The notes beneath the pieces are model-generated. The model worked only from the letters and a program-made list of their open reading frames with translations, made no database searches and was not told the origin of the DNA. A program made the translations under genes and the position numbers. From positions 76,074,001-76,138,000 of the forward strand of contig CM060733.1 of assembly GCA_030704615.1 (NCBI GenBank): a stretch of 64,000 nt of DNA, written 5' to 3'. Positions within the stretch are counted from its first letter, which is position 1. Each line of letters opens with the position of its first letter. The stretch is from Takakia lepidozioides (Eukaryota > Plantae > Bryophyta). Below are positions 26,931 to 63,345 of this stretch, piece after piece.

Positions 26931-27006
26931 TTTCTTGAATGGGAAATCGGCGAGAGAGACGAAGAGACCCAATGAAATGAAAAGAAAAAAAAAATAAAAA
27001 TAAAAA

Positions 27007-27585
27007 CAGTGTTGGACTCGTATCGTATTTTGAACACACCGGGCTGGTACTGGTATATAGGCCTCCGGCCAATTGTGATACCAGGGAGGTACTGGTATTG
27101 TTATAAAATCTAAGATTTGGATGCCATGGTGGTATCACTAATACATGATTGGTGACGTGTTTTACGGGTATCAATAGCAAGAGTATATAGAAACCGATAC
27201 CATGGCATTATCAATACTGGTATCAAACAAACTCACGATGTGTTAATATTGAAATGCCCACTTCTCATATAAATATGTACAAGCATTCTTCTCATTGGAT
27301 TTATTCCTCAAAGTCTCTAGCTTCACGTATTTCATCTTTAGTTGCATCTAAGAGCTCATGGATTCAAGACTGAAAAAAGTCTGTTAGGTTCATATCAACA
27401 AAAGAATTGCAGCCACTACGAATATCTACGGCCGTCGATATTGATACCTAGGTTTTCTTCACAAACTGGATCTGGTACTGGTATTAGATACCAGATTTTT
27501 AACCACCTACCAGACTGGTAGGATATCGTCCACAGTATTAGGAAGCAGATACCAGGCCAATACGGGTATATGCTAGGTAGTGGCC
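27007..27585. mobile_element. Second, inverted and one-end-truncated copy of the 20305-20933 hAT MITE
   Basis: Begins CAGTGTTGGACTCGTATCG. Its reverse complement is colinear with about 20410-20933, and ORF 26878-27180 mirrors ORF 20757-20954. Confidence 0.85.
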
Positions 27586-27789
27586 TGAGGTGGATACCAT
27601 TCATGATTAACTCTATGATTGGAAACTGTGTTGTAGTCTGGAGTGCGCTCTTCGAGGTCCTTGTCTCCTCTGCAAGGTGCAGCCTCATTACAACGATGCC
27701 ACACACAATTCAGAGGCCTGGACTGACAACGAGCGGCAAATTTTGAATGATGAGACGAGAGGCCGATTGCCCATTTGGGTTTTGGGAGA

Positions 27790-28047: not shown

Positions 28048-29789
28048 GAATGAATATATATATATATATTGCTGTATTTTGAGATCTGTGGGAGATTCCA
28101 CTATCTTTTCTGTGGGACATTATAAAATGCCATTTCATTTCATTTCATTTGTTAGGTATTTGTGGTAATGGTACTGTTTGGTCTGTTCCATTTCCCTTGT
28201 ATTCCATCCATCTGGTTCTCTGGTGACTCGTCCTAAACTAACTGTGCTTCTAGACTTGCAGATATCTACGTTGATATATTTTTGCAGTTTTTACAATGAA
28301 GACCTCATTAAGCTCCCCTGAAGGTAATTTTAGGATCTTTGGGATCCAGGGAGATTCCCTATCCAGGGGTATTTTGTATATTTTTATTTTTAATTGTTTT
28401 TGGTGCTTCATTTTGAATTGTTAAATACGGATAAATAGTCATTGAAGAAGCTTTGATTAAATTGACCCCATTTAAAGCTAGACATTGGAGTTTTAAAGGG
28501 CTTTTGCCGTTCCTAAGGGGTTGACCCGAAGCACCCAGGAAATGGAGGGGTAGTGGGAAGAGGTCTCCCCTCTTCTTCCCTAAACTCGATAGGTGCTTTG
28601 TGAAGGGGCAAAAAAAAAAACCAAGTCCCAGCTATTAATGCTTCAGGGGTTTAGGCTAGTAGGAATTAGTAAATAATCAAGACTTTGAATGAAATTACAA
28701 GACTAAAAACACATAAAAATACCGTAGGAATTAGGAACGCAAATTGTCTTGTGAGGGAGAAAGTTAAATTCTTCTTTGCCGGTAGGGATTAGTTATTACA
28801 TAGAAACTGCCACTAACATGCCAAGGATCCCTTGCAGTGTGGATGGTTCTTGAGCCCAACCCATTCCGCTACACACCTCGACCCCTCCTAGCTAGTATGT
28901 CATCACCCTGGCCGCGGCGCCCAGGGCTCGTCAGATTCGATGGTGATTCGTATCGGCACGATAGAGACAACTTTTCCATACCTTGTTATATCTGTGGCAC
29001 TTACATTTGTTTCTGCCACTCCATTTGTAGGAGCATCTTCGTCTGCAGAGTCCAGTCCCAAGTCTCCAACGACTACAATGTGGGGAGAAGATGTTGCCGG
29101 TCGAAGAGTCTGACTGTGGTGACGCAATGTGGCACATTGAACAGACTCCCCAATGATCAAGATTCGGATGTTCCGCTCTCAGGGCGACCACATTTGTGAA
29201 ATGCACCTCTAAAATTTCAAAAGGCACTGACGGAACTCCTGCACCGACATACACAACCCTATTTTAACTAATTCTGGACTTTTGGCTTAAATCTGGACCA
29301 AACTTAATATGTATTTGAATTAAAATTAATCCAAATTTTGTTAATAATATCTTGGATAGTAATGTGTGATTGAACTTTGTGAAATTACAAGTGATGTCAT
29401 ACTTGCTTCAAAATGTAACATATAAGATGTCCATTTGACATTGAAGTGCTTGTGAAGTTGTAGTGTAACTCAACACTTCATTGAACGTCGACTGGGAAGT
29501 CGAATGATGTAATATTACATTATGTTACAATCACGATAAACAAATGTGTCGAATCGAACATGGGATAGACTCATAGTACTCTACCATACTTGATATAAGT
29601 TGATAGTAATTTTGATTGAATTTTCATGTTGACAAGCACAATATTCATAGACAATGCCATTGGAATGATGTTTTGGGTGTGAGAAGGGTAGTAAAACATT
29701 AAAATAGCGTGAACATTAGGAAGATTAGGGCAATAAAATAAGGTTTGGGGTGTAACTAGATATATTAAATGCAATAAGGTCCAAGTTTG

Positions 29790-30850
29790 TGGTGACTCAA
29801 AGAAGGGTTAGGTTTAGGGTTTTAAAGGGTTTAGGATAGAGAGAGAGAGAAACAAATATGGACGACTCTTAACCTCTGTAGAATGTAAAAATGTAAGGGG
29901 AATTTGATATCCATGTAATCATTCTATCATACGTTATCCAACTTGAAAATTAAAGAAAACATTAAGAGAATGATACAAATTTTACAAGAGGTAACATGGT
30001 AGACAACAATAAGGTTTGGAGTTTATTATAAGTAGGGTACTACACTAAGGTTTTTGGTATATGCTAAAAGTAATGGTTTAGGGTGCTAAGGGTTACGCTT
30101 AAGCTTGGGGTAAGGATTATTAAGGGAAGGGTAAAGGGAAGGGTAAGGGTTTAGGGTTTGAATTTAGGGTAGAAAGGGACAAACAAATATAGAAGACTCA
30201 CACATGGTAATACAATAACTTGGTTTGGAGTGTAAGTACGGTAGTTACACACTAACCTGGTTTTTGGTATATTATGGTAAGAGTACTAATGGTTTAGGGA
30301 GGTAAGTGTCAGGCTTAAGCTTAGGGTAAGGATTAAGACCAGGGTAAAGAATTATAGGTAGTAAGGATGGGTTTAGGAGTAGTTGGATTTAGGAGGTAGT
30401 TAAGGGCAAAGGGAAACAAATATAGAAGACTCACATTGGTAGTACAATAACTTGGTTTGGAGGTTTGGTAAGTAGGGTAGTATAGTAGGGTAGGAACAAC
30501 TAATATGGTTTTGGTAAGGGTACATAATGGGTTAAGGTGAGTAGTAAGTGGTATTTTAGAAATTGTAGGTAAGATTAGGGTGGTAAGGATTAGGAGTAAG
30601 GTAGTTGTAAGGGTTTTGTTGAGGGTTTGGATATATAGTGGAAGTACACAAAGGTTTTTGGTATATGGTAAGAGGAATAGTGCTAGGGTAGGTTATGTGC
30701 TAGGCGTAAAAAGAGTGGAAGGGTTAAGGAAAAGGGGTTATGTGATTTTAGGGTTAGGGTAATAACTTATTATGTAAAAAAATGGTAAGGATAGAGAGGT
30801 TTGATGGTAAAGGATTTAGGTTAAATGGACAAACAAATATAGAAGACTCG
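29790..30850 (+). repeat. Degenerate telomere-like (TTTAGGG/TTAGGG/TAAGGG) G-rich tract with a longer-period repeat AAACAAATATAGAAGACTC (x4)
   Basis: For example GGTTTAGGG at ~29810, GGGTTTAGGGTTTGAATTTAGGG at ~30146; anchor motif at ~29850, 30181, 30415 and 30831. Confidence 0.75.
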
Positions 30851-31269
30851 CACTCACTGCAATGAGACATTGCAAAAAAACATTTAGACCGGATTGAAAG
30901 AAAGAAGACAAGAATCCAGGGGTAGTGCCAAGAATTATTATTTTTTTTTTGTGCATTGTCTGTTTTGTAAGCAGAATCCCCCATGTCACGAATATATGTA
31001 GATGAAAAGAATGTATAGATGCAAAAGAGAATCGCAGTGCAGATTCACGGCAGAAAAAAAAAAAAGATGAACGTCCACTGCCCACTCGAGGTTCATTGCG
31101 ACAGAAAAAAAAAGACAAGAAGGATCACCCAAAGCAAAAACGAAGGGAAAGAAGCGTAAATAAATTTTTATATCTTAAATGAAAGACCGGAAAAGGAAAG
31201 GAAATAATAACTCAACATTTAGTCCAGGGATGAAAAGGAAAATGTTCGCGCAGAAGGAAACCTTCAGGT

Positions 31270-34200
31270 ATCTGGCTGAAGGATAGCAACCTCCAAAATT
31301 CGCGCGCCGCCTTCACTGCTTTCCACCGCTGTAATTCTCTTGGTGCTATTTCTTGTCGTATTTTTTCGTGGCAGCATTGTCCACACGACATTGTTCACGT
31401 GGATCCATTGAGCAGGATCTGACAGGTTGTACTCCCAAACTTTTGACCGACAGTCCCTGTACCTCTCAAAGTCTGAGAGGGTAACCTCATTTCTTCGGTC
31501 TCCACCACTCCACCTTCACTTTCTTAAAATTAGGATCTTCTCTTTCTCGGATGACATCTGAAATTGCCATTCCCATCCAGACCGGGCACGGCGTTGGGTC
31601 ATGAGGGCGAACGAGCACAAAAAACCCTTTTCTCAATATCCTTGAACGGATTCAAGGGTATCCTTGGACGCTCACACCTAGGGCCACAGTAAGGTTCTGG
31701 AACTTCATCCTCATCTTCCATATCTTCCTAGGGCCACAGTGGCTGGGTTCTGGAACTTCATCCTCATCTTCCATATCTTCCAGTATCTGTGGCTGGATGC
31801 CATCCCTCCGATGGTTTGAGGACCACTTCCACATCTTGACGCTGGAGTTTGTAGGAAGCCACTCCGAATCAGTAGCTGACTTCTTGTACTCCATAACGGG
31901 CCAGCCATCCGCATCTTTAAAAAATCAAAATACGTGCATCTCTGAGATCCCGACCAAAGCCTCTTTTCCATCATGAATACAACCCTTAACAAACTTCTTG
32001 AAGTCGGGAACCTCCTGTGTGATTTGAGGAATGAATTGCATATCTTGGGAGATCATGAATGACCTCATCAAATCCGGAAGAATGTAGGTGTTGCGTTCCT
32101 TTAGCTTCTTCGAGAGATAAGGAATCCGTCAATATCTTCATGGGTGTGCCCGACCATGAGAAAACCAAGCTGGATCTCTTCAAAGACATCTTTGGTAGTG
32201 AGGAGGGATAAGAAAGCAAGCATCCATCTGTTCTTATTGTCCTTGGAGGAGTTGTCCATCTGCAAATAAAGTCGTCTAGGAAGTGGTCGAGCACCACGTT
32301 TATCGTGCGGCCTGCAGGGTTTCAGAGCCTCCAAACATCTCGATTTACCTCTCATGAGCGTTTCAAAAAAATCATTTTGAACTTCAGTGTCGAAAATGTT
32401 CATGGATTCCCGGCATGTCGGCTTTTCCAGTTGGCGCAGGCACCGAGCCAGCGACCCAATTGTGAAGTTTGAATTGCTTTTCCAGAACTCAAGGGAAAAT
32501 TGAGCGTAAGCTCCATCTCCGTGTCCGTGCGTAACCATTCCTGTCAATGAGACAGGCAACCGACCCAATCCGGAGACCATCTTATTCGTCGTCTGTAGCC
32601 TCGGAATAGCCGTTTTCCTATGATCCATCTTATCATAAATAATACATAGGAACTCCTCCGGAACCATAACGGACTCATTCCTCCAGCTATGGTACAGCCT
32701 TCTGCAAGACTCTTGATATCTCAAGTGCAAATCAAGCGCCTGCTTATGTGCGACCTGTTCGGAACTCCTCTTAATCGACTTCTTGATCAAGTCCTTGAAC
32801 ATCTCGCATTCTGTGCACTTAGCAAAGGTGCTTCCTGTTTTCTCCTGTTAGGAAATATTCGATTCCGTATACGGCTTATAGCTAGCTGCGAGACTCCTTT
32901 CAAATCGAGCAGTCTGTTTGTCTGCACCCCAACTCCCCAACAATGTCAACGTCCACTGGGCAGTGGAGGTTCTACAAAGTGGAAGAACAAGAAATCATGA
33001 TGGCATAAAAAAGAATAAAATCATCCACAGTATTTTGAAAAACGAAAGGGACAACGAAAAAAGTCACCTCGTTGGACTCCTCTCGAATTCTCTTCCAGTT
33101 CATTTCAGGTGGCAAAATTCTCAAAGTATCCCGACGTCCCTCTCCAATGCAACGTGTTTTGTGAAGCATAAGGTCAGTATTGGCATTGATAATGGATATA
33201 ATGTTCCCCTCTGCCTGGAGTGTCCCTGGTCACGGCCGCTTGACGCCACGATTTCCGTGGAAAGATGACAAACAACCCTCTTTACTGAGCTTTTGTACTC
33301 TATGTACGTTGACCTTCCAATTCCGTGTATTATCCACCATGCTTTCTCACAAACATCAACACCTTCTATCGTAACATACGACCTGCGTGATGACCCATCC
33401 ATAATGTGAAGTCGTTTTGAAACATTCAATCCAAGTTCTCTCCTCTCATCGAATGACGAACCCCAAAATGCAGTACAAATTGCCAAGGTTTTTCTCCAAT
33501 CAAAATACTGGCAGCACTGAAGCTTGCAGCAAGGTTTGCTGCTCACCGACCTCACTTCATCCAAAGTAAGATTTTTCTTGCACTTTTTTTAGTCCTCCAT
33601 ATTGGATGGATTTTTCTTCCTAGTAAAATGTCTGTATGTTGCTTTCAATACGCCTGTACCATGGTCGTCATTCTCCATGTCACTGCATGATCGTAGGAAA
33701 TTTTCGAGATCAACGGAGAGTATCCGGCCATTTTCAATAAGTCTTGTTTTTGTTAACGGCCATTTCACAATAGACATCAGTGAACCGGACTCTCCAGAGA
33801 TTGTTCTGGTGACCAGAACCCCATCATCGTCCTCTCCGAGTTTGTCATTCAGAATGATCTCGTTAGGAATGCGTGCCTGAATTCGGCCTTCAAACAGGGC
33901 GTTTCCGTCCTCCCCAAGAAGAAGACACTGCAAGTTTCTCCAACATTCTCTCCCCAGACCTGCAGGCAGATCCCCCCCAGTCTCATCGTTGGACGGAATA
34001 TCATTGCTTTCAGTGCTTTGTCCTTGATAATCACTACCTTCTGTGATGGAATGACATTCTGGGTTTCTCGGGGATGATGAATCCACAGTTTCATGCGTGC
34101 GAACACAGGACACGTCCCACACAACTGGAGTCCCAATTGCCTCCTTCAATGTGTCAGCATCCATGTGTCGATAAGGCAGAGGACATGAGCCAAATGCGTC

Positions 34201-34356
34201 ATCACAAAAGATCGGGGTAACTGAAATGGTGGACGAACACAAGTGGTGTCCGTGGCAAGTTCCATCCCCAGAAACATTCAGGCAATCTCCTGAGGCAACA
34301 ACTGAAGGAGATCCAGGAAGCGACAAAAACACCCTTTGGCCTACTTGGAACCCCAT
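31270..34356 (-). pseudogene. Sola1-like (DUF7869-type) DDD transposase, spliced, with frameshifts
   Basis: Pieces 33589-34356, 33121-33564 (CCKLQCC, VCEKAW), 32972-33169 and 32101-32802 with IIYDKMD, LYLQMDNSSKDNKN and FLMVGHTHEDID catalytic motifs. Intron at ~32923-33067. Confidence 0.8.
32948..32971. promoter_or_regulatory. 24-bp palindrome copy (AACGTCCACTGGGCAGTGGAGGTT) in transposase intron
   Basis: Member of the element-wide AACCTCCACT-N4-AGTGGAGGTT family; function inferred. Confidence 0.6.
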
Positions 34357-34365
34357 GAAGTTAGT

Positions 34366-34651
34366 AACCTCCACCGGGCAGTGGAGGTCCAGTAAAATCC
34401 TATTACTGAAGATTAACTGAAGGAAAGAATGTCTTGCCACCGAAAGGAGAAACTTTAAGTATAACTTTTTCGACGGTTTTGAATGAGAAAACAATATGGA
34501 TTGAAAAAGTAAAGTCAATGTTTGGATCTACACTGGGACTGATAAAAAACAATTGGAATTAAATTGGAGTATGAGGGCGGAGTATAGACTACATCTATCG
34601 GAACTATCAGATGAAGTCACAATTGCCAACCTCCACTGGGCAGTGGAGGTT
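34366..34651. promoter_or_regulatory. Two 24-bp palindrome copies (34366-34389, 34628-34651) just upstream of the transposase ATG
   Basis: AACCTCCACCGGGCAGTGGAGGTC and AACCTCCACTGGGCAGTGGAGGTT; the first is about 10 bp from the probable start codon at 34356. Confidence 0.6.
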
Positions 34652-36944
34652 GGATGATATCTGTTGATGAAATAAACCACATGGATCAACAATGGATAAT
34701 GAAGAAGCCCTCTGTAGATGACAAAGTGATTCTATGGATGGATGAATAATAATGTGGCGACTGCCCTGTGGAGGTTTGGGAGTAACTTTAGACAAACAAA
34801 AGCAAGTTTAGCTGGTGTACATGGAGAGTACACAAAAAATTGAGTATCATACTATCCTACGTGAGAAATGTGCAGTTGACACCTGAGACTAAGGAAGCAA
34901 GGAGAGACTCAGAGGCTGCTTCAGAAGTACCCTATGGGCAGAGTGGTGTAGGACAGGCAAAGAGGTACACGTTGTCCAGAGAGGTGCATGAGAGAAAAGA
35001 AGCAAGTGAGAGGTTCAAAGTGGAAAGTTGGTGTTGTGTGGATTCGGACGTTATATAGAGGTGACATGTAACTTTCATCTTTGAATCGCTCCAATGGCAG
35101 TGTGGTATGATGCTTTCTCTCCTGGATTGATTGTGGCCACCGTGGATTAAGGCGGAATCGAACGGCTTATTTCAACTCATGAAATCTCGGCTTCATTGAA
35201 AGTGTGCACAATTTTCCATTTATTGACAGCAGCCATTGTCACATTAATTATGGAACAAACGATAACGGCCGCGATCAGACTGAATTCTATCGTACTTGTA
35301 CGTTAGTAGGACTAGAAGTCTGGCATCATTATCATGCGGCTCTGACAGCAGACTCTGGAATAAGTGTGAAGGATGTCGATTCTGACAAGTGGCCTGGAGA
35401 AATGAAGTCAGGCGGCTAATCGCCACAACTAATTCGAGACTCCACATTAACAATCGATCATTATAATTAGCTGGGAGGAATCCGGAGGTGAACCATAAAG
35501 CACTTTGAGATTGTTCTGTTTATATTTATCGTGCTGTTACAGTTGTAAGCGTGTGGGTTGCAGAGTCTGACCAATGGCGTCATTACAATCATTTCGTCCT
35601 TTTTTCATTCGTCTATCCAGTCGTCTGTCCAAACGTGTGTGCATTCGTGGAACAAAAGTTGAACTAATTTCATCTGTGTGGATGGACAGTATTAATGTTA
35701 GTTTGCGTGGATGGGGCAGAACATCCATTTGGGCCGCGCGACCGTTCGATTGCGGACGGAGGCGATGGTTCAGATCATCCTTGACGGTCGCTTATAAGGG
35801 GTGCGCTCTTTGAGCCCGGCCTTTGGGCTTCCCATTTTCTACGCGTAAGCGCTGCGCGAGTGAGAGCTTAACAGTTGAGAGAGGAGAGCGTGAAATAGAA
35901 GAGTTTTGGAGCTCGTTTTGCAGCGACTGGACACTGAAGCGTGGAGAGAAAGAGCAGACTTGGCCGAGTGCAGAGAGAGGAGAGGGTGAAAGGCGAGAGA
36001 GTGAAATAGGCAAAATTTGAAGAGCGGGGAGGAGAGACCGGACAGTGGCGAGTGGAGATTGATGAGTGTAGAGGCGAGAGCATAATGCAATTACCGGCAG
36101 GCGGAGGTGCGGAAGAGAGTATCAAACGAAGGACTGTGGTTGTAGGGCCACCAAAATGGCCGGCACAAGCAGGTGCAGCATTAAAAACTCCCTCTCTTCG
36201 TCTTCTGTTTCACGTTTTGTGTTGGCCTGTTCTGAATTCATGTGTTGGCCTGTTCTCAGTTTTGTGTTGGCCCGCTCTCGATTCATGTGGCCTGTTCAAG
36301 ATTCAATTCGTTTCGATCCTGCTTCATTCTTTGCTGCACTGCACTGTCTTCAGTGCTTCAGTCCGTGCTTTAGTGCACATTAGGTTTCTGTTTCATTGTT
36401 TGCTTTGTTGTTTGCTTCAATGCTATTTCATTCTCTGTCAATTCATTTCACTCCTGCTCTATTCTGTGCTTCAGTGCATTCTTGAGTCATTGCTTCACTG
36501 TTGTTTTTCAATTCACCGATGGTTTGTAGGGTGGTTTTGTGTGGTGGTTTTGTGTGCAATTGGGTTTGTGTGTGCTTGTTCTGGTTGATTAGGGTAATGG
36601 TTTAGGGTGGCGGGAGATTATCATGCTGGTTGTATTGCTTGTTTTGTTCATTGTGGTGGTTTATTGAAGACAGTGGTTTCGGAAATGCCCGGATGTTTAT
36701 TTCTCAACCATTTTCTTGATCCCCAAATCCAGCGTTAGTTGATGCATTTCTTCCCATTCAAATTCAATTCTGAATGGAAATTTTCATTTCTTATCCAATT
36801 ATGTCGAATTCGGCAATTCTGAAAAGCCATGATAGCCTAGTCTACTTGTATTCTACAGTAGACATATGCTAACATTAGACTTCGTGCAGGCCAGAGTAGA
36901 GTATTCGTAGACCCATGTCATGCACATGAGCAACCAGAAACTGG

Positions 36945-37169
36945 AACCTCCACTGCCTAGTGGAGGTTCGCGTGAATTCTGTATGCGGAAGCTGAAGGCA
37001 TTTTTTTAAAGTAAGGACGAAATCGGATAATTACGGGAAAATTGAAATCAGTTTGAGATGATGTGGGAACGAGTGATGGAATCATATGTGTAACATTGTA
37101 AGTGTGACACATACTTTCCAACAAAACTGGGATACGATAATTGGGAACCTCCACTACCCAGTGGAGGTT
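36945..37169. promoter_or_regulatory. Two 24-bp palindrome copies (36945-36968, 37146-37169) upstream of the cargo ORFs
   Basis: AACCTCCACTGCCTAGTGGAGGTT and AACCTCCACTACCCAGTGGAGGTT. Confidence 0.6.
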
Positions 37170-37318
37170 CGATATTTCTTTGGGTCAGCCAGTTACACAC
37201 TCTGATTAGTTTTTATGTCAGAATGAGAAAGAGGAACGAGGGTGGGGAACTGGTGTCTGACGATGAGTACAAGACAGCCAGATTAAATTGAAGCAAGAGA
37301 CGGTGTTCGGTAGACGGG

Positions 37319-37876
37319 ATGGAAGCGGACCGTCCAGATCAAAAACATGGTGTTTCGGAACCAAATGAAAAATCCAGTTGGGGGTCTACCGAGCCAAACA
37401 AAGTGTCTATCAATGACAAAAATGTGACTATAGAACCCCCGCGGAATGCATCCGAATCTCCAAGCGATACACCTGAAGTCATCTGTAAGGATACCCTGGC
37501 AGAAATAAGAGAAAGCGTTCATGTAAACAATGATATCAACGGATCTCCTGCCTACTCCCAAGATTATCCGACATACACCCCTTCAGACTATTCCCCAGAC
37601 ACATTGGCGGCGATACGAGTGACCGTTTTTGGATATCCAGCATCTCCGGGTTACTCGCCAGCATCTCCTGAATCCACATCAGGATCTGAAGGATATTATC
37701 CTCCAAACTTCCTCCTGGACACTGAAACAAGCGGGGGAGTCCTGGAACTACTGGACGTCTCCGGATCTCCAGGATACTCCCCTGCGTCTCCTGATAGTAT
37801 CACCGGATCCCCAAAATATACCCCTCCAGACTATTCGTCTGATACACTCAAAGAGATAAGAAGGAGCATTCTGTAG
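37319..37876 (+). CDS. S/P/Y-rich protein with RNA polymerase II CTD-like heptads
   Basis: SPGYSPASP twice, plus SPAYS, YTPSDYSP and SPKYTPP; DTLxxIRxxV/I repeated three times. Confidence 0.55.
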   Translation: MEADRPDQKHGVSEPNEKSSWGSTEPNKVSINDKNVTIEPPRNASESPSDTPEVICKDTLAEIRESVHVNNDINGSPAYSQDYPTYTPSDYSPDTLAAIRVTVFGYPASPGYSPASPESTSGSEGYYPPNFLLDTETSGGVLELLDVSGSPGYSPASPDSITGSPKYTPPDYSSDTLKEIRRSIL

Positions 37877-38197
37877 TTCTTGGGTATATAATCTAGAATC
37901 GTCTGAATATAATGCGAGAAGTTCCTTAGTATATTTTGGACGAATTAGGTTCGAAGATTTCTATTGTAGATTAGTCCTGTTTAAGGATGATGTACTCAAT
38001 GGCTCCTGAGCCTCATTTTCATTAAAGTTTTTTTCTTCAACATCTGAAAAAAATGGAGGATTTCCCATTTCATGTAGAAAGACTCGTACATACAAACCTC
38101 CACTGTCCAGTGGAGGTTCTCATTTCTGGAATGATGGATGCTAGTAAGAGAGATCCTGTTATTGATTATCTAATAAATTTGTGTTTGGTTGTAACAG

Positions 38198-38668
38198 AAG
38201 ACATCCTACACCATCAGATTGCGTCCCGGGATTGATTGGAGATATTTGTGGGCATTCGTATGCCGGAAGTCCTCACATTTCAAAACTAAGCATACCGCTA
38301 TTTTTGAGCTTAACCCAGAGGTGACAGATTGGGGCATCGTGCCTGTCGGTACACCTCCTGATCACAAACTGTCTTTTCATTACAGAAGTCTTGCAGTAAT
38401 AACAAACTTAAAATACGCAGAAGCTCTCGATATAGAGTTTGAATCTGAAGAGGAAAACCCGATGTTGGTTTTGTTCCTGCATGAGGATGCGAGAACCCCC
38501 AGGACGTTTGGTTTCAAAGTGGAGGTGGGTCATCTGAACAAGTCGTTGATGAGTGAATGCGTTGCACTGGGTTTTAGATTTCCAGACGAGGACTCTGTAT
38601 TTACAGACGTAGGTTTGTCGAGGGCCTGGAGTATTTTTTCTGGATCTTCTGCACACAATGGGGAATGA
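38198..38668 (+). CDS. Uncharacterised cargo ORF/exon (149+ aa)
   Basis: Open frame with globular-protein composition after a TAACAG acceptor; no family recognised. Confidence 0.45.
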   Translation, partial: KTSYTIRLRPGIDWRYLWAFVCRKSSHFKTKHTAIFELNPEVTDWGIVPVGTPPDHKLSFHYRSLAVITNLKYAEALDIEFESEEENPMLVLFLHEDARTPRTFGFKVEVGHLNKSLMSECVALGFRFPDEDSVFTDVGLSRAWSIFSGSSAHNGE

Positions 38669-38904
38669 CATTCGCAAGAAACGAGCACTAGAGGAAGCAT
38701 CAAAGCTGAAGAGGGGAAAACGCAAAGTCGTCGACAGCCGGCAATGATGACAATGAGGCCGGGACTTCCGCAGGAAAGTAGAAACAGAAGGAGGATCAGG
38801 ATCCAACATTGATGTCAGATAACAAGAGACCTAAAGCTGGGGAGATTTTTGACAAGGAAAAATGCGAGAAGATGGAGGAGAGTCTCACGGAGGAATAAAA
38901 TGAT

Positions 38905-41789
38905 GTATTTCCATTCAGATTCGAGAGTACCTTCCTTGTGAAGGTTTCCATGATGGAACTAGCTCCAAGGAGCATGGTTTACAGGCCGTTAAATATCAAG
39001 CATAAGGACGAAGTGAAAGCGCGACTCTTCCAACTTCATTTGTTCGACTCCAAACGTCCAGTGTATCTTGCGCCAATCAACCCTTCCAATCCTGAGAAGA
39101 TTGCTTCATCGCGACCGAAGCAACGGAAGGAGATGGACGTATCAAGGTTCTTCGTAATTGGTGGACAACACACCATCGTGGCAGCAAAGGTAATGGACTT
39201 CATTTCCTCCCAGACCTCTCTTTTAACGAACCTCCACTGGGCAATGGAGGTTGGTGTTGAACTACAAAATTGGATATATCCCCACACTTTCAACTCTCTC
39301 ACCCATTTTACATTAACTATAGCAGGAACTTCTCGAGGATCTTTCCGACAGCGAACTGAAGGAGGACTACCGGGAGTGGCCTGCGAAGATTGTATGGTCT
39401 ACCGATGAACAATGGCTCCTGAAGTTGTCAAAGCTCCTCAACGATCCCAATAAGGTGCAAAAGTTTGATACAACAATGCCGGAGAAAGTTGCGCATGCGC
39501 GAATGTTATTCAACCTGAGGGGGAAGCCAAAGAAATACAACGATCACACCACAAAGTCCGAGACAAAACAATGGAAGGTATGCATTTATGGAATCAAAAT
39601 CTACTATTCACATTCATTTTATGCTAAAGAATACTTCTGTTGTCGGAGTGACAACTAATTTATCCCTGAATGAATGTGCAGGAGTTCATGTTTGTCTGTC
39701 ATTTGATACTAGAAATGGGTAGCATTAAGGAGGCAATGGTCTTGATACTTTGCAACGACGACGTTTGGAAGATCTAGGAAGATGTTTTCAAAAACTGGGA
39801 GCAGGGAAAGCTACTCGACCCGCTTGGGATACAGTACAAGGGTGAACAACAACAGCTCACGAAATCTGCTATCGCAAAGCTGCAAGGGTTGAACAGATGG
39901 CAGCTGATAAAAGTTGCGCAGAAAATCCTGGACCTGAAATTGACCATTCGAGATTACAAAGGTCAAGACAAATCAATTCAAGGCATGAACAAATACATAG
40001 ACGACATGAAAATGCGCCGGTTTATTGTCGGCGATGTGATGGAAGTGTTGGGGTGGCCTCGGAGGAGCAAATAGTGCACGGAACCGTACACTAAGGACGA
40101 GTGGCGTGAAGTGAAGAGAAAGTACCACTTCAATAAGGCAGAGTTCTCAACATTTAAAGACAAACTGGGGACGGATTACATCCAAAGCAAGATCAAGATG
40201 AACATGGAGACAAAACCACTCACGGCCGCTTTTGTTAAGTACGTCTCCTCCATCAAGAAAGCTTATGAGGATAGAGAGGATGCCATGGCGATTATTTCAG
40301 CGAGTTTCAAGACTCATTACGCTATCATGGGTGGAGAAACAAAATTCGCCGATGCCAAGTCTCGTCTGCGACTCGCACCGAAGAAACGGTTTGACAACAT
40401 AGCGATGGTGTTCGTCAATACAGTTTCTGAAGACGACTCTGTCGTATTTGAGTCCAACGATTATGTGAACATACTGGAGGCCTTTGTGGCTCAGAAAATG
40501 AACACGAGTGTTTTTGTTTTCTTCTCGACGCAACCGTCCTCGGCCAATCTGGTCTCCTACATCCGAAATGGTCCCGGAAGAACATCGTAGCTTGTCCGTC
40601 AGGGATTTTATGTTCGGGGAGAGTATGAAAATATTACAAAAACAACACGAAGACTTTCTCTCGGACTGTACTGTGCCTGGACTATGTTTTTCCAGCGACA
40701 CCTGAGGAGATGCAGAATCCGGACGAGCACATCTCCACCGTACTGTTAATCGAGCCAATACAGCCGATTCTGGAATGGCCCTCTGAGAAGCCATCAGCTT
40801 TTGAAGAAGAGTGCAAGACTTATAATCATAAGCTACAAGCTGACACATACGACTATTTGGCCTCCCTGTTTTGTCAAGATGGGATGTCCGCTGTCAACAT
40901 CTTCGGAGGCGTGATGTTGACGTACGCCCTTCATGTAAGTGTAAAACCTTTTTGCATTTTAAATACAAATTTTACATTTTTGATCCACCGCATCCTCTGT
41001 TTTACTGACTGGGTTTATCTGCAGGCAAGAAACATTCGAGTGCTTGAGATCAACCACTCAACCAAGAAAAAGTTTTGCAAAGGAAAAGTTGATAATTTTA
41101 AGAAGCTTCAAATTGAGAATGACAATGTTGCTGAAGAGGTTGACGGCGGAGACGATGATGAGGATGAGGAGGAGGAAGATGAAGACTTGGAAGAAGGAGG
41201 CGGACATTCCGAACACGTAGAGGAGGACGAGGTCATCGATGGTAATGGGGACAACGAGGGCCACGATGGTGACAATGCAGACCGTTCGGAGGATGGACAC
41301 CTGGATGTGATTCAAGACTTCAGAACTCAGTCACATGATGGTATTGAGAACATCACCCAAGACATTGTGGTCCACAATGTCGTGATTCTGGATGGGGATT
41401 CGTCGAGTTCAAGCGAGAGAACTAAGAGTAATCCTGCTTCACCATCAAGGGGTGCGGAGGCGAGCTCAATCGAGGTGCGCGGCAATTTGATTGGGAGTGC
41501 AGACGATTGGTTCAAATCTGTAGAAGGGGACGAGCCAGCGCCAATGTCCCCGTCTCCCGCGAAAGAGAGGGTAGAGAGAGTGAGGACAAAGAGCCCGTGT
41601 CCCACAAAAGACAGTGGACACAGAGGGAGGACTAAGAGCCCGTCCCCCGCAAAAATGGACAGTGGTGACAGAGGCAGGACTAAAAGCCCGTCTCCAAGAA
41701 AAAACAGCGGAGGCAGAGGCCGAACTCAGAGCCCAACTTGCTCTCAAAGTGTCTCCCAGCATGTCAATTTGGATGTAGATAACGAATGA
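38905..41789 (+). pseudogene. ParB/Srx-like domain fused to a degenerate beta-class amino (N6A/N4C) methyltransferase-like region, with acidic and RxRTKSPSP tail
   Basis: YRPLN...FFVIGGQHTIVAAK (ParB-like GxHR signature). GT-AG introns at ~39190-39323, 39578-39681 and 40935-41023. C-terminal FDNIAMVFVNT (position of DPPY) and LASLFCQDGMSAVNIFGG..ARNIRVLEIN (motif I/II-like). In-frame TAG stops. Confidence 0.5.
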
Positions 41790-42285
41790 CACCTGGAGAT
41801 TTATGGTATCTTCAAGCATTATAAATGGAACAAATTGTGTGTATTACATCTGGTTGTGTTCTGGTTGTGTTTTTGGCAATACCTGATCTGTATCTTAATA
41901 TTTCCCACATTCTTGAACTTTACATGTGACTAACGGTAAGAAAACTCGTATAGATCCATGAACGGAAATTGGAGGAAATCACACAAACCCGGACAGAATC
42001 CATCGCGACTCAAACAGTGAGGAGGCAGGTGGACTTAACAATAAGGGCCAGCCCAACTGATCCGGTCAAACAAACAACCTCCACTACACAGTCGACGTTG
42101 CGAGATGGAGGAGATGAGCCTGAGATGGTCGTTGCTCACCGTGAAGGAAAAGAGAGCGAGCAGCACCATCAGCAAATTCGGAACCCCTCCCCGAAACGGG
42201 TATACACCTCATAACCATCTTAGCTATGTTCTTCTTTGTCCTTCTTCTAGTTTTCAAAATAAATTAATTGTTCTGTTATTCCACA

Positions 42286-43024
42286 GGATGATATGATTCA
42301 CCCTCCAATCGACTATCACAAATCTGTGAACCCACAGGATTGGTATCGCCTCTCTGAGGGACCGAAAGGATCTCGACCAGGATACTACGTACTGGTTCTT
42401 GACGTCGGTTACCTTGGTGAGGTTTATATCCGAGATGGTCCGAGATCCCCTCCCGCAACCCATCCTTGTATGTGCGCTAGAAAATTCAAGCTTGCAGTCC
42501 GAAATGGGTTGGACGACTTCCTGAAATAGGTCCTTAAGCATTTTGAGGTCTACTTTTGGAACACTGGACCGTTAGAAAATGTCCTGGATATAGGGCTGGC
42601 TTTGTTTGGAAGAAGGTTTTACAAGGTCAGGGAATTCAGCAATGAGAACTGCGTGAAGCATAGACAGACGTTCAGTGCCGACTGGCCCAAATATCCGAAA
42701 GCGCCAATATATCTTAAACGTCTCTACGACCTTTTCACTGTAGACGACCCTGTAGCGTACAAATCAAACACACTTCTTATCGACACTGTAGAAAATATGT
42801 ATAAGTCTTACTTGAACCCAAAGTCGCTCGGTATCTTCCTTCCAAAATATAAAGCGCTCGTCGACCCATACAAGGACAGGTTTCTTCTTGATGAACTCAA
42901 ACCGCACCTGGAAGAGTTGCGGTTATCCGGAAAAGACGTTGATATATTCAACGTGGAAAAACCCATAGGATGTCCACCGTATAATGACCCAAAGGTCAAA
43001 TGCCTCTTGCTATGGGATTTGTAG
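42286..43024 (+). pseudogene. FCP1/NIF-family HAD phosphatase domain 1
   Basis: YVLVLDVG...RNGLDDFLK*VLKHFEVYFWNT...YLKRLYDLF...NTLLIDT...NPKS; one in-frame TAG at 42527. Confidence 0.7.
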
Positions 43025-43203
43025 TGGCAGGTTTATCTTAGAAAACAAAAATTTCCTGACGCTTCATTGGAACAGTTTGAAACGTAGATGGCTGCTCTAG
43101 ATTTTCATGAACCTTGACTGTCCAGTGGACGTTTCTCCCAATGTCAATCCTGTCCTTGGTTTATCTTGATTACCACCTGAGTGGATGTATGAATTTCTCA
43201 CAG

Positions 43204-43830
43204 ATTGCAGCACCAGTTTCTCCAGTTGCGAAATGATTGCGCTTGATAATTTTTGACCTGAATGGAGTTTTGTGCAAAGTGTTGAAGCACCAGAAGAGCT
43301 AATGTGTCCCCCGAATGTCCGAGACAGACTACATGATACCAGCTCTTGTTGGATTTCGACTTGTCTATAGGCTGGAAAAATATCGTGAGATGTGGACAGA
43401 GTTGAACAAACATTTCCGTCTAGGTATATGGAGCTGCATGATGTACAAGAACTTGCAGCCTATACTGGACTTTATGCTTCGGGGTCTTCCTCAGCCGGCA
43501 TTCGTTATGTCTCAGGAAGATTGTATCTCATGTCCTACTTTCTGTCCACCCTCAATTTATATCAGGATACGACCCGCCGAGTCTGTTCTTGAAGCCATTG
43601 ATGACGGTCTGGCAAAGATTTGGTGGTCAGTACAACCTGAGTTACACTCTACTTATTGACGATTCAGCTATTAAGTGTGTGTTGAACCTGCCTGAATCCT
43701 GCCTGATTCTAAAATCGTTTGAATCTGTTGAGACGGACTCTTGCTATCTCCAGAAGGTTCTTTAGAAATATTTGCTTGGAATGAAGAAATCTCACACGGT
43801 TTCCAGTTATCTCAGGGAAAAGAGGATATG
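43204..43830 (+). pseudogene. FCP1/NIF-family HAD phosphatase domain 2
   Basis: LIIFDLNGVLCK...KHFRLGIWSCMM...TLLIDDSAIKCVLN; stops and frameshifts. Confidence 0.75.
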
Positions 43831-44449
43831 ACTTAAGCCTTGTCAGAATGTTTCCACCGATCCCAAGTTTAAGCCTCTCCTGGATTATGTTGATGATTCT
43901 AATTACGGGAATCTCCGATATGATGCTTCAAAATAAAGATTTTATTGATCAACCACGTCTGTGATTCAATGTTTATTTTTTATTGGTTTTTTTTATAGGT
44001 TGTATTGTTTTTCTAGAAAAACTGTTGTGTACTGTGATTTTCTTTTCAATCTGAATTGACATGGAATTGTTTGCTATTTCCTAGTCTCATCCAAGCGTTT
44101 CCCCACCCCATACCATCCCGATCCTCTAAGATACAGGCCTTCTCCGAAACTCGTCTCGGGGGCTTTTTCAAATCCGACAACCTCCACTGTGCAGTGGAGG
44201 TTATCCCGTGTCTGTACATTGACCTTGTAAGTTCGTTTCTACAGGTTCATGGCGATGCTGCTGATGCCAACTTCTTGTCGGGACCTCCATTGGAATCCTC
44301 CATATCAGAAATTCGTCTACAGAGGGACAACATTCACACTACTGTTGAGATTTCTATCATCGACGATGAAGCATCATCCAGGCACTTGGCTTCCCTAGGA
44401 TAACTTTGTCTCTCATCCTTTACATGCAACAGCGGGGAAGAGGAAACGG

Positions 44450-45266
44450 ATGTTGTTAATTTTGAGTGTCAACGGACTCCTCTGCTACCGGCCACCCCCA
44501 ACCGGTGGTGAACTGTTTAAGGAGAAATTTCGTTTCAGGAATGTGACATTTCAAGTTCCTGACAGACCGTTTGTGGTGCCTCGGCCTGGAGTCTTGGAGT
44601 TTATGGACCTTGCATTGAAGCATTTTCACGTGGCCATTTGGTCATGTGCTGATAGAGGTGTTCTTTGTATGATGTTGGAGAGCTTCGTCCCCACGAAAAT
44701 AGCGAAGAAGTTTTGCTTCATACGGTCTGTTGAGGATTGTAAAGATACCACCGGTTATATCAGGCCCGGGATGACATATCTCGTGAAGGATATTCGAAGT
44801 GTTATTGTCAGGTACCCTGGTAGACTGTTTGCTACGCAGGGGCAAATACTTCTTGTAGATGATGAGCCATCAAAAGGCCTACGAAACCCACAAAATACTG
44901 GATTCTTCCCTTTCTCATTCAAGCCTTCACCAAACGGATTGCATGACAGGGATGATAACAAAAGCAGTGTGGCCATATATATCGGAGATGGCTGGAGCTT
45001 CAATAGTCGTTGATTACATTAACGAGAACCGGGCAAAGTGTTCTCATAAGCCTATTGGTCGAAACCATGCCTGCTGGGCCTGGTATAGAAGATATCTTGA
45101 TCCTCGTATTTGGATCCCACAACAAAAAGAACCTGATTACCTTGGTAGGCATGTGGATCCCACTCTTCTCTTGTTTGTTCATAATTTGATTTTCCAATTC
45201 TTTTGCAGCTGCATTTGCACTCTTACCTCAACATATCCATATGCAAAACTTCCACTTTGGGCCTAA
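44450..45266 (+). pseudogene. FCP1/NIF-family HAD phosphatase domain 3
   Basis: LLILSVNGLLC...RPGVLEFMDLALKHFHVAIWSCA...LVKDI...ILLVDDEPSKGLRNPQNT; frameshift near 44960. Confidence 0.8.
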
Positions 45267-47006
45267 CATTTGTCATTTCCATCGCCTCTCCCCAGTTACA
45301 TTCAAGGAACGAATACTAAAAGAGGAACAAGAGCTGCGTGATTGGGAAGAATGGCGGGCGTGTCGGGAGGCTTCAAGGACATCAAGTAGAGTTGGCAGTA
45401 ACATTTCAGATGACAATGTCAGCCGGTTTCACCTTCCTGAAAGTATCTCCGTGTCCTCTGGAGCGGAGACCGTTGCAAGTGGTTGTGGTAATCGGAGGCA
45501 TGCCTTGACTGCAAGCCGTTTGGGAGGAGACTCAATATTATTAATGAGTTAGTATAAGCCGTAACGGTTCTATGCCTTCAGAATCAATGGCTTGTATGGC
45601 ATTAAGTCCATGAACGGATGGACAGTTGACATTCATTTTTCTGTTGGTCCATCGCCTTGAATGATATAATCTCAAATAAAATATGAATGTTTCATATCAT
45701 CAATCAGGTCCCGACAGACTCGTTTTTCCATGTTGTCCTCTTCATCACATGCCATCATTGTTTCATATTTGGTTCTGCCATTATTCCATGTTTGTTTCTG
45801 GATGTCATTTTGGATATCGGAGCTCTCATCATTGTTTGATTCATTGCATCATCCCATTCCTTTTAATGAACGTCAACTTGGCAGTGGATGTTCATCTAAG
45901 ATACATACTTGTATTTTTGCGTAGAATGTGTGGAGGATTACATAATTTGTTGTTATATAGTGCACAAATAGTCAAATAATTATAGATATATCTCTTTATT
46001 TCTATTATAGATTATAATTATTCATATACCTTGTATTATTTCTGGACCAAACAAAAGTCCAGAATTAGTTAAAATAGTGTTACACTAGTTTGTTCAAACC
46101 ATTCATAGCGCGGGCGTCTAAGCCTCACAAGTTTTGGTTCTGCCCTGATGACATTGCACATTGTGTGATGGGGAGTTTTCGTGAATCGGTGATAATAAAT
46201 CCCCAAATTCTTGTTGTCTGGCCAGTGAAGGTGGGAACGTCACTCTCCAAATAGGAGATTGAGATGCTGGAGGATGCTGGAGGATGCTGGGTTTTGCCTT
46301 CCAAGAGGCCCAACTGTGCAACTTACACCCATGTCTTCAATGTCTTTGCCTTCCACATTTCTTGCACGTCCTCCAGTTGGCAATGATTGGCCCACAAAAA
46401 TGAATAGAAAACAGGTCCCTCGGGTTGAGCCAGGTGTAGATCATGAGTTCAAGGTGGAGTGACTCTGCTAGAACTCTGCGGTGTCGAGTGACCCAAATTA
46501 TTAATGTCCCCCCTCTAGGCTATGGGCGGGTGTACACAATGGTGACCTCTAGATCTATTGTTCATGGTAGGACCTATGATATTACAATTGGAATTGCACT
46601 TGCCCGGACTTTCAAAGCATGCTTTTGAGCTCTCTTGGGAAGAGAGGCAGGTTTGTCCCGTGCAAGCATGTATACTATATCTACCTTCAGAATTTTGCGA
46701 TCCTAAACGAGACAAGTACATTCACCAATGTACGCTAGGTTACAGTGAGGTTCCACTACAACAGAAATAAGGATTTGTAACTGGGATTTGTGACTATTTT
46801 CTGGTCATAAGTCCCTTATGACTAATAGTCATGTAACCCCTTAGTCGTAGAGCAACTGTAGTCACGTTCATGGGCAAGCCATTCAATTGGCCTGAGCCGA
46901 AAGACGTATATAGGACGGAGTAGACCATAGTCTCGTAGATATGAGATTTGTGGCGGTACAATGGTTCTTTTATGAAGACATAATTCAATTTTGATCGTGC
47001 ATGTAA

Positions 47007-51376: not shown

Positions 51377-52976
51377 GAAGACCAGCCAGATCAAGCTGGC
51401 GTCAACGCCACCTTCATCTAGCACCTTCAGAGGGGACAAAACTATATATATATTTATATTTTATATTTTATATTTTTTGTAAAACTTGCAAATGAACCCA
51501 ACCCCTGCTTTGCAAGCAAAAGACCTGGCGTTTACCCAGCATGGATTTCTGGTCACCTGGAATAAGGACATGACAACGAATCATAAGCCAAGCAATTTGT
51601 AAATGTCATTCATCCCAAATAGCACACCAGAAGACCAGCCAGATTAAGGTGTCGACGACACCTTAATCTGGTACATTCGGGGAAAATAAAATAATAATAA
51701 ATTATTATTATTATTATTATTATTTGAAAACTTGCAAATGAACCCAGCCCTTGCTTCGCAACAAAAGACCTGGCGTTTACCCATCATGGATTTTTGGTCA
51801 CCTGGAAGAATGACATAACAACGAATCATAAGCAAAGTAATTTGTAGATGCCATTCACCCCAAATAGCACACCAAAAGACCAGCCAGATTAAGATGTCGT
51901 TGACGACACCTTAATCTGGCACATTCGGGGAAAATAAATATAAATATAAATATTAAATTTTTATTTTTATTTTTATTTTTTGAAAACTTGCAAATGAACC
52001 CAGCCCTTGCTTTGCAACAAAAGACCTGGCATTTACCCAGCATGGATTTTTGGTCACCAGGAAGAAGGACATGACAACGAATCATAAGCCGAGTAATTTG
52101 TAGATGCCATTCATCCCAAATAGCACTCCAAAAGACCAGCCAGACACCTTAATCTGGCACATTCGGGGAAAATAAAATAAATATAAATATTAAAATTTTA
52201 TTTTTATTTTTATTTTTGAAAACTTGCAAATGAACCTAGCCCTTGCTTTGCAACAAAAGACCTTGCATTTACCCAACATGGATTTTTGGTCACCAGGAAG
52301 AAGGACATGACAACGAATCATAAGCCGAGTAATTTGTAGATGCCATTCATCCCAAATAGCACTCCAAAAGACCAGCCAGACACCTTAATCTGGCACATTC
52401 GGGGAAAAATAAAATAATAAAATAATAAAATAATAAAATAATAAAAATTAATAATTAATCGTTAATTGTTTTTATTTTTTTTTTTTTTTGAAAACTTGCA
52501 AATGAACCCAACCCCTGTTTTGCAAGCAAAAGACCTGGCATTTACCCAGCATGGATTTCTGGTCACATGGAAGAAGGACATGACAACGAATCATAAGTTA
52601 TATGGTCCGAGCAATCTGTAGATGTCATTCACCCCAAATAGCACACCCAAAGACCAGCCAGATTAAGGTGGCGTTGACGACACTTTTATTTGGTACATTT
52701 GGGAAAAAATAAAATAAAAAATTATATATATATATATATTGGAAAACTTGCAAATGAACCCAACCCCTGCTTTGCAAGCAAAAGACCGTTAACCGAGTAT
52801 GGATTTCTGGTCACATGGAAGAATGACATGACAACGAATCATAAGTTATGTAGTCCGAGCAATTTGTAGATGCCATTCACCCCAAATAACACACCAGAAG
52901 ACTAGCCAGAGTAAGATAGATTAAGGTGTCATTGAGGACACCTTAATCTGGCACATTCGGGGAAAAATAAAATAAA

Positions 52977-53622: not shown

Positions 53623-53987
53623 TGTCATGGTTTTAGTCATGGTTATCTAGAATTACCTACTTCTAGTTAACTAGGACATTTTAGATATCTATATTTATAT
53701 TTTGTGTGTTGGGACTTCATTTGGTCTCACATGCCAAGTGAGGTGTCGAGCCTCACTTGGGACATGGGGATAGGTTTTCCCCTTGTGAGGATGGATGAGG
53801 CTCATCTTCTTGTAGTTGAGCCTCCATGAGCCTCTCTCACCTCCATAGCTCTAGGTATTGAGAGGGAGTGTGGTGAAGGCTTTGTAGGGTGGATTCCCTT
53901 AGCAAGGGTGCCCTTGGCTTGACTTAGTTTATGTGATTGAGTGGATTCATGAGTGGAGGGTTTCTATTATGTTCACTTCCATTATCA
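53623..53987 (+). repeat. Terminal repeat A1 (365 bp, TG...CA)
   Basis: About 13 differences by eye from A2 (62895-63259). Confidence 0.95.
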
Positions 53988-62796: not shown

Positions 62797-63345
62797 AGGG
62801 GGGCGATTGTGGTATAGCTTTCTAGGATTGTGTGCTTAGATTGTGTGGTGGACAACGATGTATGTTGTGGCACGATGCTTAGGTGCACGACAGCTGTCAT
62901 AGTTTTAGTTATGGTTATCTAGAATTACCTACTTCTAGTTAACTAAGACATTTTAGATATCTATATTTATATTTTGAATGTTGGAACCTCATTTGGTCTC
63001 ACATGCCAAGTGAGGTGTCGAGCCTCACTTGGGACATGGGGATAGGTTTTCCCCTTGTGAGGATGGAGGAGGCTCATCTTCTTGTAGTTGAGCCTCCATG
63101 AGCCTCTCTCACCTCCATAGCTCTAGGTATTGAAAGGGAGTGTGGTGAAGGCTTTGTACGGTGGATTCCCTTAGCAAAGGTGCCATTGGCTTGACTTAGT
63201 TTATGTGATTGAGTGGATTCATGAGTGGAGGGTTTCCATTATGTTCACTTCCATTATCATTATGGTATAGCTTTCTAGGATTGTGTGCTTAGATTGTGTG
63301 GTGGACAACGATGTATGTTGTGGCACAATGCTTAGCTGCACGACA
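62797..63345 (+). repeat. PPT (62797-62807), full LTR B1+A2 (62808-63259) and terminal B2 (63261-63345)
   Basis: AGGGGGGCGAT directly precedes TGTGG. B1 and B2 differ at 3 of 85 positions. The B1/A2 junction is the palindrome GACAGCTGTC. Confidence 0.92.

Follow-up and report, generated by a model that had tools for sequence, protein, structure and literature searches.

Private palindromes in a DUF7869 transposon of Takakia lepidozioides and its relatives: candidate self-recognition sites

Introduction

Takakia lepidozioides (Bryophyta) carries a large DNA transposon on contig CM060733.1 of GenBank assembly GCA_030704615.1. The element occupies 29255-46081 of a 64-kb window, the whole stretch of DNA that was analysed (64,000 nucleotides; positions 76,074,001 to 76,138,000 of the forward strand). 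It encodes a transposase with a DUF7869 core together with cargo genes, and a short palindrome is dispersed through its non-coding DNA.

The closest experimentally tested system is VANC/VANDAL of Arabidopsis. VANDAL elements contain family-specific non-coding motifs, often in arrays, and the element protein that binds these motifs removes methylation (Hosaka et al. 2017, PMC5735166). The Takakia element is similar in having a short motif dispersed in its own non-coding DNA, with motifs that differ between families and form arrays in relatives. VANDALs, however, are Mutator-type transposons, their motif is not palindromic, and VANC is related neither to ParB-like proteins nor to Sola1. Binding and methylation loss have been shown for VANC, whereas for the palindromes described here both are hypothetical.

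ParB-domain accessory proteins of giant algal transposons were already predicted in 2025 to bind their own element (PMC12477816; bioRxiv 10.1101/2025.02.11.637652). Sola1-1_Ec32 of Ectocarpus has a ParB-methyltransferase gene opposite the transposase (PMC12477816), and the Plavaka element PAG3 of Bostrychia has a ParB domain and adjacent inverted-repeat arrays (bioRxiv 10.1101/2025.02.11.637652). The Takakia element shares with the former a probable Sola1-type organization and an accessory gene opposite the transposase that is predicted to bind its own DNA, and with the latter inverted repeats beside a gene. It differs from the algal elements in that its palindromes are dispersed at gene boundaries and in introns instead of forming one adjacent array. 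It also differs in its NIF-type phosphatase-like cargo, in its weak ParB assignment, and in that palindromes are present in cargo-less relatives as well.

The bacterial parS consensus is a 16-bp palindrome of the TGTTNCACGTGAAACA type. The site in the window is 24 bp long (AACCTCCACTG-SS-CAGTGGAGGTT) and is unrelated to parS in sequence. The two systems are alike in having a multi-copy palindromic site and, as proposed, a dimeric reader with a ParB/Srx-type domain. They differ not only in length: no helix-turn-helix (HTH), complete CTP box, or ParA is found in the scanned open reading frames (ORFs), the host is a eukaryote, and there is no segregation function.

TnpA of En/Spm (CACTA) binds a repeated short motif, partly in inverted pairs, near the promoter and the element ends. 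Its role is the control of element expression and methylation, not cutting. The Spm motifs are only subterminal, whereas the palindromes described here are also found in introns and between internal genes, and the element is of another superfamily.

No paper describing palindromic tags in Sola1 elements was found in the literature. New here are the clade-wide occurrence of tags that are private to each subclade, their recurring positions at the transposase gene, the contrast with conserved element ends, and their presence in cargo-less relatives.

A dispersed palindrome confined to the element

The query AACCTCCACT-N4-AGTGGAGGTT was searched in the 64-kb window at up to three mismatches, with 100 shuffles as the control. 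Twelve copies are found between 31070 and 45892, every one within the element, while the other 47 kb of the window and the 100 shuffles contain none. The exact 10-nt half-site is present 13 times inside the element and 0 times outside it. The initial annotation had reported about 12 copies confined to the transposon, and this is confirmed. Its list of positions is amended: the copy at 31070, which it lacked, is among the 12, and two of its entries, at 29484 and 34753, are remnants only.

The true unit is composed of two 11-bp arms and a 2-bp centre (11+2+11; AACCTCCACTG-SS-CAGTGGAGGTT). It had been described as conserved arms around a free 4-bp centre. The arms are indeed conserved, but positions 11 and 14 are mostly G and C and belong to the arms. 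This centre is GG/CC in 8 of the 12 copies, and its orientation is random relative to the gene strand.

In a table of 24 half-sites, positions 1-3, 5, 6, and 8-10 are near-invariant. Positions 4 and 7 swap C with G, and these transversions recur in several copies (29484, 31070, 32948, 42076, 43110, and 45869; e.g., AACGTC and TCGACT). C/G transversions at these positions are unexpected in a copy that is otherwise decaying by C-to-T, and the variants may represent a second tolerated half-site type. The half-site table also contains changes in one arm without compensation in the other. The remnant at 29484 has two changes that complement each other across the arms.

The flanks of the copies are unrelated, as originally stated. 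Direct repeats of 2-10 bp flank none of the 12 copies, and the palindromes are therefore not insertions resembling miniature transposable elements with inverted repeats (MITEs), an origin that the initial annotation had named among those that would contradict its proposal. The exact motif is also rare elsewhere. Outside the source genome, a search of 241 million metagenome records yields it 6 times, always as a single copy within an unrelated hairpin that resembles a bacterial terminator. There are 0 copies in viral contigs and no match in Rfam. An origin as a head-to-head pair of element tips, which share AACC with the palindrome, was considered and rejected: there is no target-site duplication (TSD), and other families have no such resemblance.

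Positions of the copies in the window

The copies were originally placed in non-coding DNA, and their positions agree with this. Three are found at the transposase gene. The copy at 31070-31093 (three mismatches) is 3' of the transposase coding sequence, ~175 nt past the point where the latter probably ends. The copy at 32948-32971 (one mismatch) is inside a GT-AG intron (~32924-33067), ~25 nt before the 3' splice site. The copy at 34366-34389 (two mismatches) lies 9 nt upstream of the first transposase-frame ATG (34354-34356, minus strand), which is where homology to relatives starts. A perfect copy at 34628-34651 is also upstream of this gene, within the divergent intergenic region, and the remnant at 34753-34776 retains its right arm (one mismatch) and has lost the left arm.

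The remaining copies are spread across the cargo. Perfect palindromes are found at 36945-36968, between cargo ORFs; at 37146-37169, 150 nt upstream of an ATG at 37319; and at 38095-38118, between ORF 37292-37873 and ORF 38195-38665. Within the ParB-like gene, a GT-AG intron (39190-39322) contains the copy at 39229-39252 (one mismatch), which is 39 nt downstream of the 5' splice site; the exon before this intron ends in FFVIGGQHTIVAAK. Farther right, 42076-42099 (two mismatches) separates the ParB-like/methyltransferase-like gene from the first phosphatase-like ORF, 43110-43133 (three mismatches) lies between phosphatase-like ORFs, and the perfect copy at 44179-44202 is upstream of the NIF-domain ORF 44399-45010. 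Near the ends of the element, the copy at 45869-45892 (three mismatches) is 189 bp from the right end, and the weak remnant at 29484-29507 is 229 bp from the left end. The latter differs at 7 of 20 positions and retains the inner TCGACT..AGTCGA.

All 12 copies avoid a coding-like set that makes up 54% of the element, with a rough probability of 1e-4 for a set defined post hoc.

Other copies of the element have contig joints near 34657/34748, 37144, and 39258. Four of the end points are within 6 bp of a palindrome edge, which is a lead only, as these are short contig ends. One joint deletes the 90 bp that separate the palindrome at 34628 from the one at 34753. These joints could be rearrangement hot spots or assembly artefacts.

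Relatives carry their own palindromes

The DUF7869 ORF has 167 homologues at 37-61% identity. Sixteen loci were taken around nine of them, all from metagenome assemblies; they are numbered with the prefix L, and W denotes the window element. The fetched relatives are 48-61% identical to the DUF7869 transposase of the window, and some of their loci adjoin a fungal-type HET gene.

Every subclade of the transposase comes with a palindrome of its own, and six motifs are observed in the relatives. Loci L012-14 carry GATGGGGAG-CG-CTCCCCATC, in about 27-35 copies; the 27 counted at up to three mismatches are confined to positions 575-6620 of L012, and the gene next to them is free of the motif. Loci L018/19 carry GTATCGGC-N5-GCCGATAC, with 26 copies across the whole 14.7-kb contig. 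The motif of L007-9, ATCTGGAGATCTCCAGAT, was found by a mismatch-tolerant scan and is present in at least 15 copies in L008. The other three motifs are GTGGGGAG-NN-CTCCCCAC in L010/11/15, CTCGGCGG-N-CCGCCGAG in L016/17, and GTATCGGCGG-S-CCGCCGATAC in L022. In relatives, the palindromes are also expanded into tandem arrays.

A matrix of motif counts against families is clean except for two related GGGGAG motifs, and shuffles give at most two matches. Motif likeness tracks the transposase tree: related motifs have 70-81% core identity, and unrelated ones 48-61%. An identity of the half-site of family E (the cargo-less family of sample ERZ25073694) with the terminal TCTGGAC of W was rejected, since the terminal inverted repeat (TIR) of L008 itself reads differently.

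The closest transposase relatives (59-61% identity) are L010:1-17593 and L015:1-21137 from ENA assembly ERZ25039595, and they have their own palindrome arrays. Their contigs run straight into bacterial gene clusters, mraZ-rsmH-ftsI-mur-mraY in one and flagellar flg in the other; the assemblies are probably chimeric. No hit to the closest transposase relative came from a scan across the genomes of prokaryotic species.

Recurring positions and conserved ends

The palindromes recur at corresponding places in different families. The gap homologous to the W intron 32924-33067 contains a private palindrome in W (32948), L012 (3569), L010 (6110/6242/6270), L008 (9834), and L022 (9907), and none in L018 and L016. 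The L012 copy is likewise ~25 nt before the acceptor, and the L008 copy is in a GT-AG intron. Copies or arrays are found just 5' of the transposase start in W, L012, L008, and L018. Copies ~20-175 nt after the transposase end are found in W, L012, L008, L018, L010, L015, and L022.

The element ends behave differently. The TIR core ATTTAACTAATTnTGGAC is kept across families with transposases that are only ~50-56% identical (W and families E, F, and D). It is located at 29262-29282 and 46054-46074 in the window and recurs with few changes at the ends in L007 (14770), L008 (13482), L022 (12976), L016 (3990), and L017 (9570). Since families with unrelated palindromes share this core, recognition of the ends by the transposase does not run through the palindromes. 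The core is also usable for locating element ends.

The ParB-like cargo gene

The ParB-like/methyltransferase-like cargo gene is located at 38947-41786 (plus strand). Exon 1 (38947-39189) contains the motif FFVIGGQHTIVAAK, and the ParB identity is that of a candidate only. Pfam gives no ParB domain at E values up to 5, and the ParB-like and methyltransferase-like exons are without any match. The cargo motif GGQHTIVAA has the glycines and alanines of the GxxRxxA CTP-binding box but not its arginine. With the exons searched singly, no HTH family of Pfam is found in any exon-sized ORF of the gene, and no ParA-type ATPase is found among the window ORFs scanned with Pfam.

Language-model look-alikes of exon 1 in the ESM Atlas are in DUF6551 and ParB_N clusters (scores 0.89-0.92) and are only a lead. 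A non-overlapping exon of the L018 homologue finds the same families (0.82-0.89). Together, the look-alikes of the two exon pieces offer convergent but weak support for a possible ParB identity. A PDB sequence search and a length-limited homology search found no true relative of the ParB-like cargo, and neither the ORF of the ParB-like exon nor the 312-aa N-terminal ORF of the transposase gave matches in word-indexed protein searches. An exhaustive representative search with the 171-aa methyltransferase-like exon returned only two spurious matches to repeat proteins; the cargo gene family is therefore not represented in that representative set.

Cargo varies among the relatives. L018 has a homologue of the ParB-like gene (YIIGGQHIVESF) and NIF cargo, and in L016/17 NIF cargo is accompanied by no more than a doubtful GGRH remnant. 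Searches with tblastn, phmmer, Pfam, and motifs detect neither a ParB-like nor a NIF homologue in L008, L009, L022, and L012-14, yet these loci have dense private palindromes. From the leftmost palindrome at 5678 to the TIR at 13501, L008 has no ORF besides the transposase and looks like a compact transposase-only element. The trait thus does not depend on a ParB-like reader, barring supply in trans.

The parS/ParB assignment of the initial annotation finds no support in the form stated, given the domain searches and the palindromes in relatives without a detectable ParB-like gene. It had also raised the question whether related families carry different palindromes co-varying with the ParB-like protein. 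Different palindromes are observed, but they are also present in families where such a gene is not detected.

The N-terminal part of the transposase

The N-terminal part of the transposase is 24-42% identical among relatives, compared with 48-61% for the core. It was modelled from a 10-sequence alignment on L008:8520-9806, which is homologous to 33592-34353 (minus strand) of the window. The model has a predicted local distance difference test (pLDDT) score of 64, with 78-90 for two N-terminal domains. These domains are predicted to be two SH3-like barrels. Their best PDB matches are the plant tandem Agenet H3K9me readers ADCP1 and AGDP1, followed by Tudor and KOW domains (weak, E 3e-4). The Agenet/Tudor-like barrels are a possible chromatin-reading module on the transposase. 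The conserved Cys-rich and helical region that follows them probably binds the conserved ends.

Candidate functions

The explanation given the most weight, at an even chance, is that the palindromes are family-private double-stranded DNA binding sites for a two-fold symmetric, element-encoded protein, and that they are a trait of the whole DUF7869 clade. Each site would be composed of two 11-bp half-sites, AAC[C/G]TC[C/G]ACTG, around a 2-bp centre that is not read. Once bound, the sites would mark and regulate the element's own DNA by controlling transcription, by anti-silencing, or by compacting a long element. With private motifs, the protein of each family would stay off its relatives. The dimeric-protein site and self-recognition tag proposed by the initial annotation are consistent with the conserved arms, the random centre orientation, the uncompensated decay, and the private motifs in relatives. 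Judging from the loci compared, the trait belongs to the whole clade of DUF7869 (Sola1-type) transposons, not to the window element alone.

The most economical binder would be the transposase, either as a whole or through a region distinct from the end-binding surface, because transposase-only compact relatives also carry sites. The ParB-like cargo protein would be the second candidate where it is present. In this order, the transposase, or some other protein that all families share, ranks slightly above the ParB-like protein. A broader scenario is more tentative. In it, a self-recognition system would be clade-wide in plant-like and fungus-like genomes, with fast-turnover private palindromes at fixed sites of the transposase gene and across the cargo. 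An element protein would confine regulation or anti-silencing to its own copies, the ends would stay conserved, and the ParB-like cargo would have joined later and made use of the existing tags.

Several points weigh against binding by an element-encoded protein such as the transposase. The function of the palindromes is entirely inferred. The transposase would need a second, fast-evolving DNA specificity beside its conserved end recognition, and the modelled fold of its variable N-terminal part points, weakly, to a chromatin reader and not to a domain that binds DNA. A cargo element with the same motif could provide cargo-less relatives with a ParB-like protein in trans. The contigs of families A and B end 2-6 kb upstream of the transposase, where cargo is possible. 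This reading offers no route by which identical 24-bp units would reach new positions with unrelated flanks. The element is matched in no RNA run, and its exon model is built from homology and splice signals.

An alternative, rather unlikely in our judgement, is that the palindromes are parS-like loading sites for the ParB-like cargo protein, which would dock there and then spread over or modify the element chromatin. A ParB-box-like gene is indeed present on the strand opposite the transposase, with FFVIGGQHTIVAAK in the window and YIIGGQHIVESF in L018, and two non-overlapping exon pieces from these two divergent homologues have DUF6551/ParB_N clusters as their nearest look-alikes (0.82-0.92). 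W and L018 both have the gene, with different palindromes and with copies in its introns. The element ends use a different, conserved motif, and accessory ParB proteins have precedents in Ectocarpus Sola1-1_Ec32 (PMC12477816) and Bostrychia Plavaka PAG3 (bioRxiv 10.1101/2025.02.11.637652). Against this stand the negative domain searches and incomplete CTP box described above, and the dense palindromes of L008, L009, L022, and L012-14. A single-sequence AlphaFold2 model of exon 1, at pLDDT 45, was unusable and was not used. Moreover, it is the transposase gene and not the cargo gene that the recurring placement follows.

RNA hairpins are an improbable alternative. Located in the 5' untranslated region, the intron, and the 3' untranslated region of element transcripts, they would control translation, splicing, or 3'-end formation or be the target of an RNA-binding protein. 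Every copy is able to fold into a stem of 10-12 bp (as DNA, -9.8 to -13.5 kcal/mol; z-scores -4.8 to -6.7), and the transposase transcript is the frame of reference for the recurring sites, which precede the ATG by 9 nt, precede a 3' splice site by ~25 nt, or closely follow the stop. Yet it is the arm sequence that is conserved, not just pairing, and degenerate copies lose pairing without compensation. Copies are also present in arrays upstream of genes and near the element end, with the centre in either orientation; neither an Rfam match nor a match of the element in RNA runs was obtained. Less probable still are selfish or mechanistic by-products with no binder, either tiny mobile palindromes (MITE-like, or like repetitive extragenic palindromes) or hot spots of duplication or conversion. 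Identical 24-bp units with unrelated flanks do imply a copy-and-insert process, and both the tandem arrays of the relatives and the four contig-joint end points beside palindrome edges fit such an origin. The absence of 2-10 bp TSDs, the confinement to the element, and the exclusion from coding sequence argue against it. So does the fact that six lineages hold different motifs at homologous positions, which suggests selection rather than drift.

If an element protein reads the tags, this would be a second, independent case, after VANDAL/VANC, of transposons with private address labels for self-regulation. The labels would then extend through an entire superfamily clade, in hosts from more than one kingdom-level group. 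The division between ends that are conserved and internal tags that are private would separate "who cuts me" from "who regulates me" and would form a clean system for studying the co-evolution of site and specificity. The tags are also a practical marker for sorting Sola1 families and are candidate orthogonal protein-DNA pairs for chromatin targeting in plants.

Element boundaries and gene content

The whole transposon (29255-46081) is 16,827 bp long and is defined by paired TIRs and an ACAC duplication on both sides (29251-29254 and 46082-46085). The left TIR is located at 29255-29284 (plus strand), with the core TTTAACTAATTCTGGAC that is kept in related families, and the right TIR at 46052-46081 (minus strand). 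The two are 30 nt each and 97% complementary. Beside each is a further TCTGGAC, at 29292 on the left and, inverted, at 46041 on the right. This heptamer occurs eight times in the window, and four of the eight are within 50 bp of the element ends.

The Sola1 superfamily has a 4-bp TSD. The element has TIRs and a 4-bp TSD as expected of this superfamily and is probably a Sola1-type DNA transposon, by analogy with the architecture of Ectocarpus Sola1-1. No link between DUF7869 and Sola1 by name was found in literature or annotation searches.

The transposase gene is located at 31267-34356 (minus strand), with the DUF7869 core (Pfam E 2e-31) at 32104-32847. Its exon blocks were set by tblastn with relatives, and splice signals were read directly from the sequence. 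The NIF/FCP1-type phosphatase-like cargo ORFs are located at 42530-45010 (plus strand), where two ORFs match Pfam PF03031 (E 3.9e-08 and E 0.01).

Diverged copies of the element stretch are found in 1454 contigs at 85-100% likeness, from DNA runs of the same organism and one plant metagenome. Between 34300 and 40200, differences from the window to these copies are A>G 54 and T>C 33, against G>A 19 and C>T 15, i.e., the window copy is richer in A and T. This excess suggests C-to-T decay of a methylated, dead copy.

Other repeats in the window

Outside the element, long inverted repeats are located at 20402-20936 and 27004-27590. They comprise ~500 nt in segments, are 86-93% complementary, and lie 6-7 kb apart. 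They are probably the long TIRs of another large element. Other palindromes are also repeated outside the element. Copies resembling TTAAGGTGTCGACGACACCTTAA are found around 51.4-53.0 kb (51643-51667 and 52921-52946), and an identical 25-nt palindrome is present twice, at 53735-53759 and 63007-63031.

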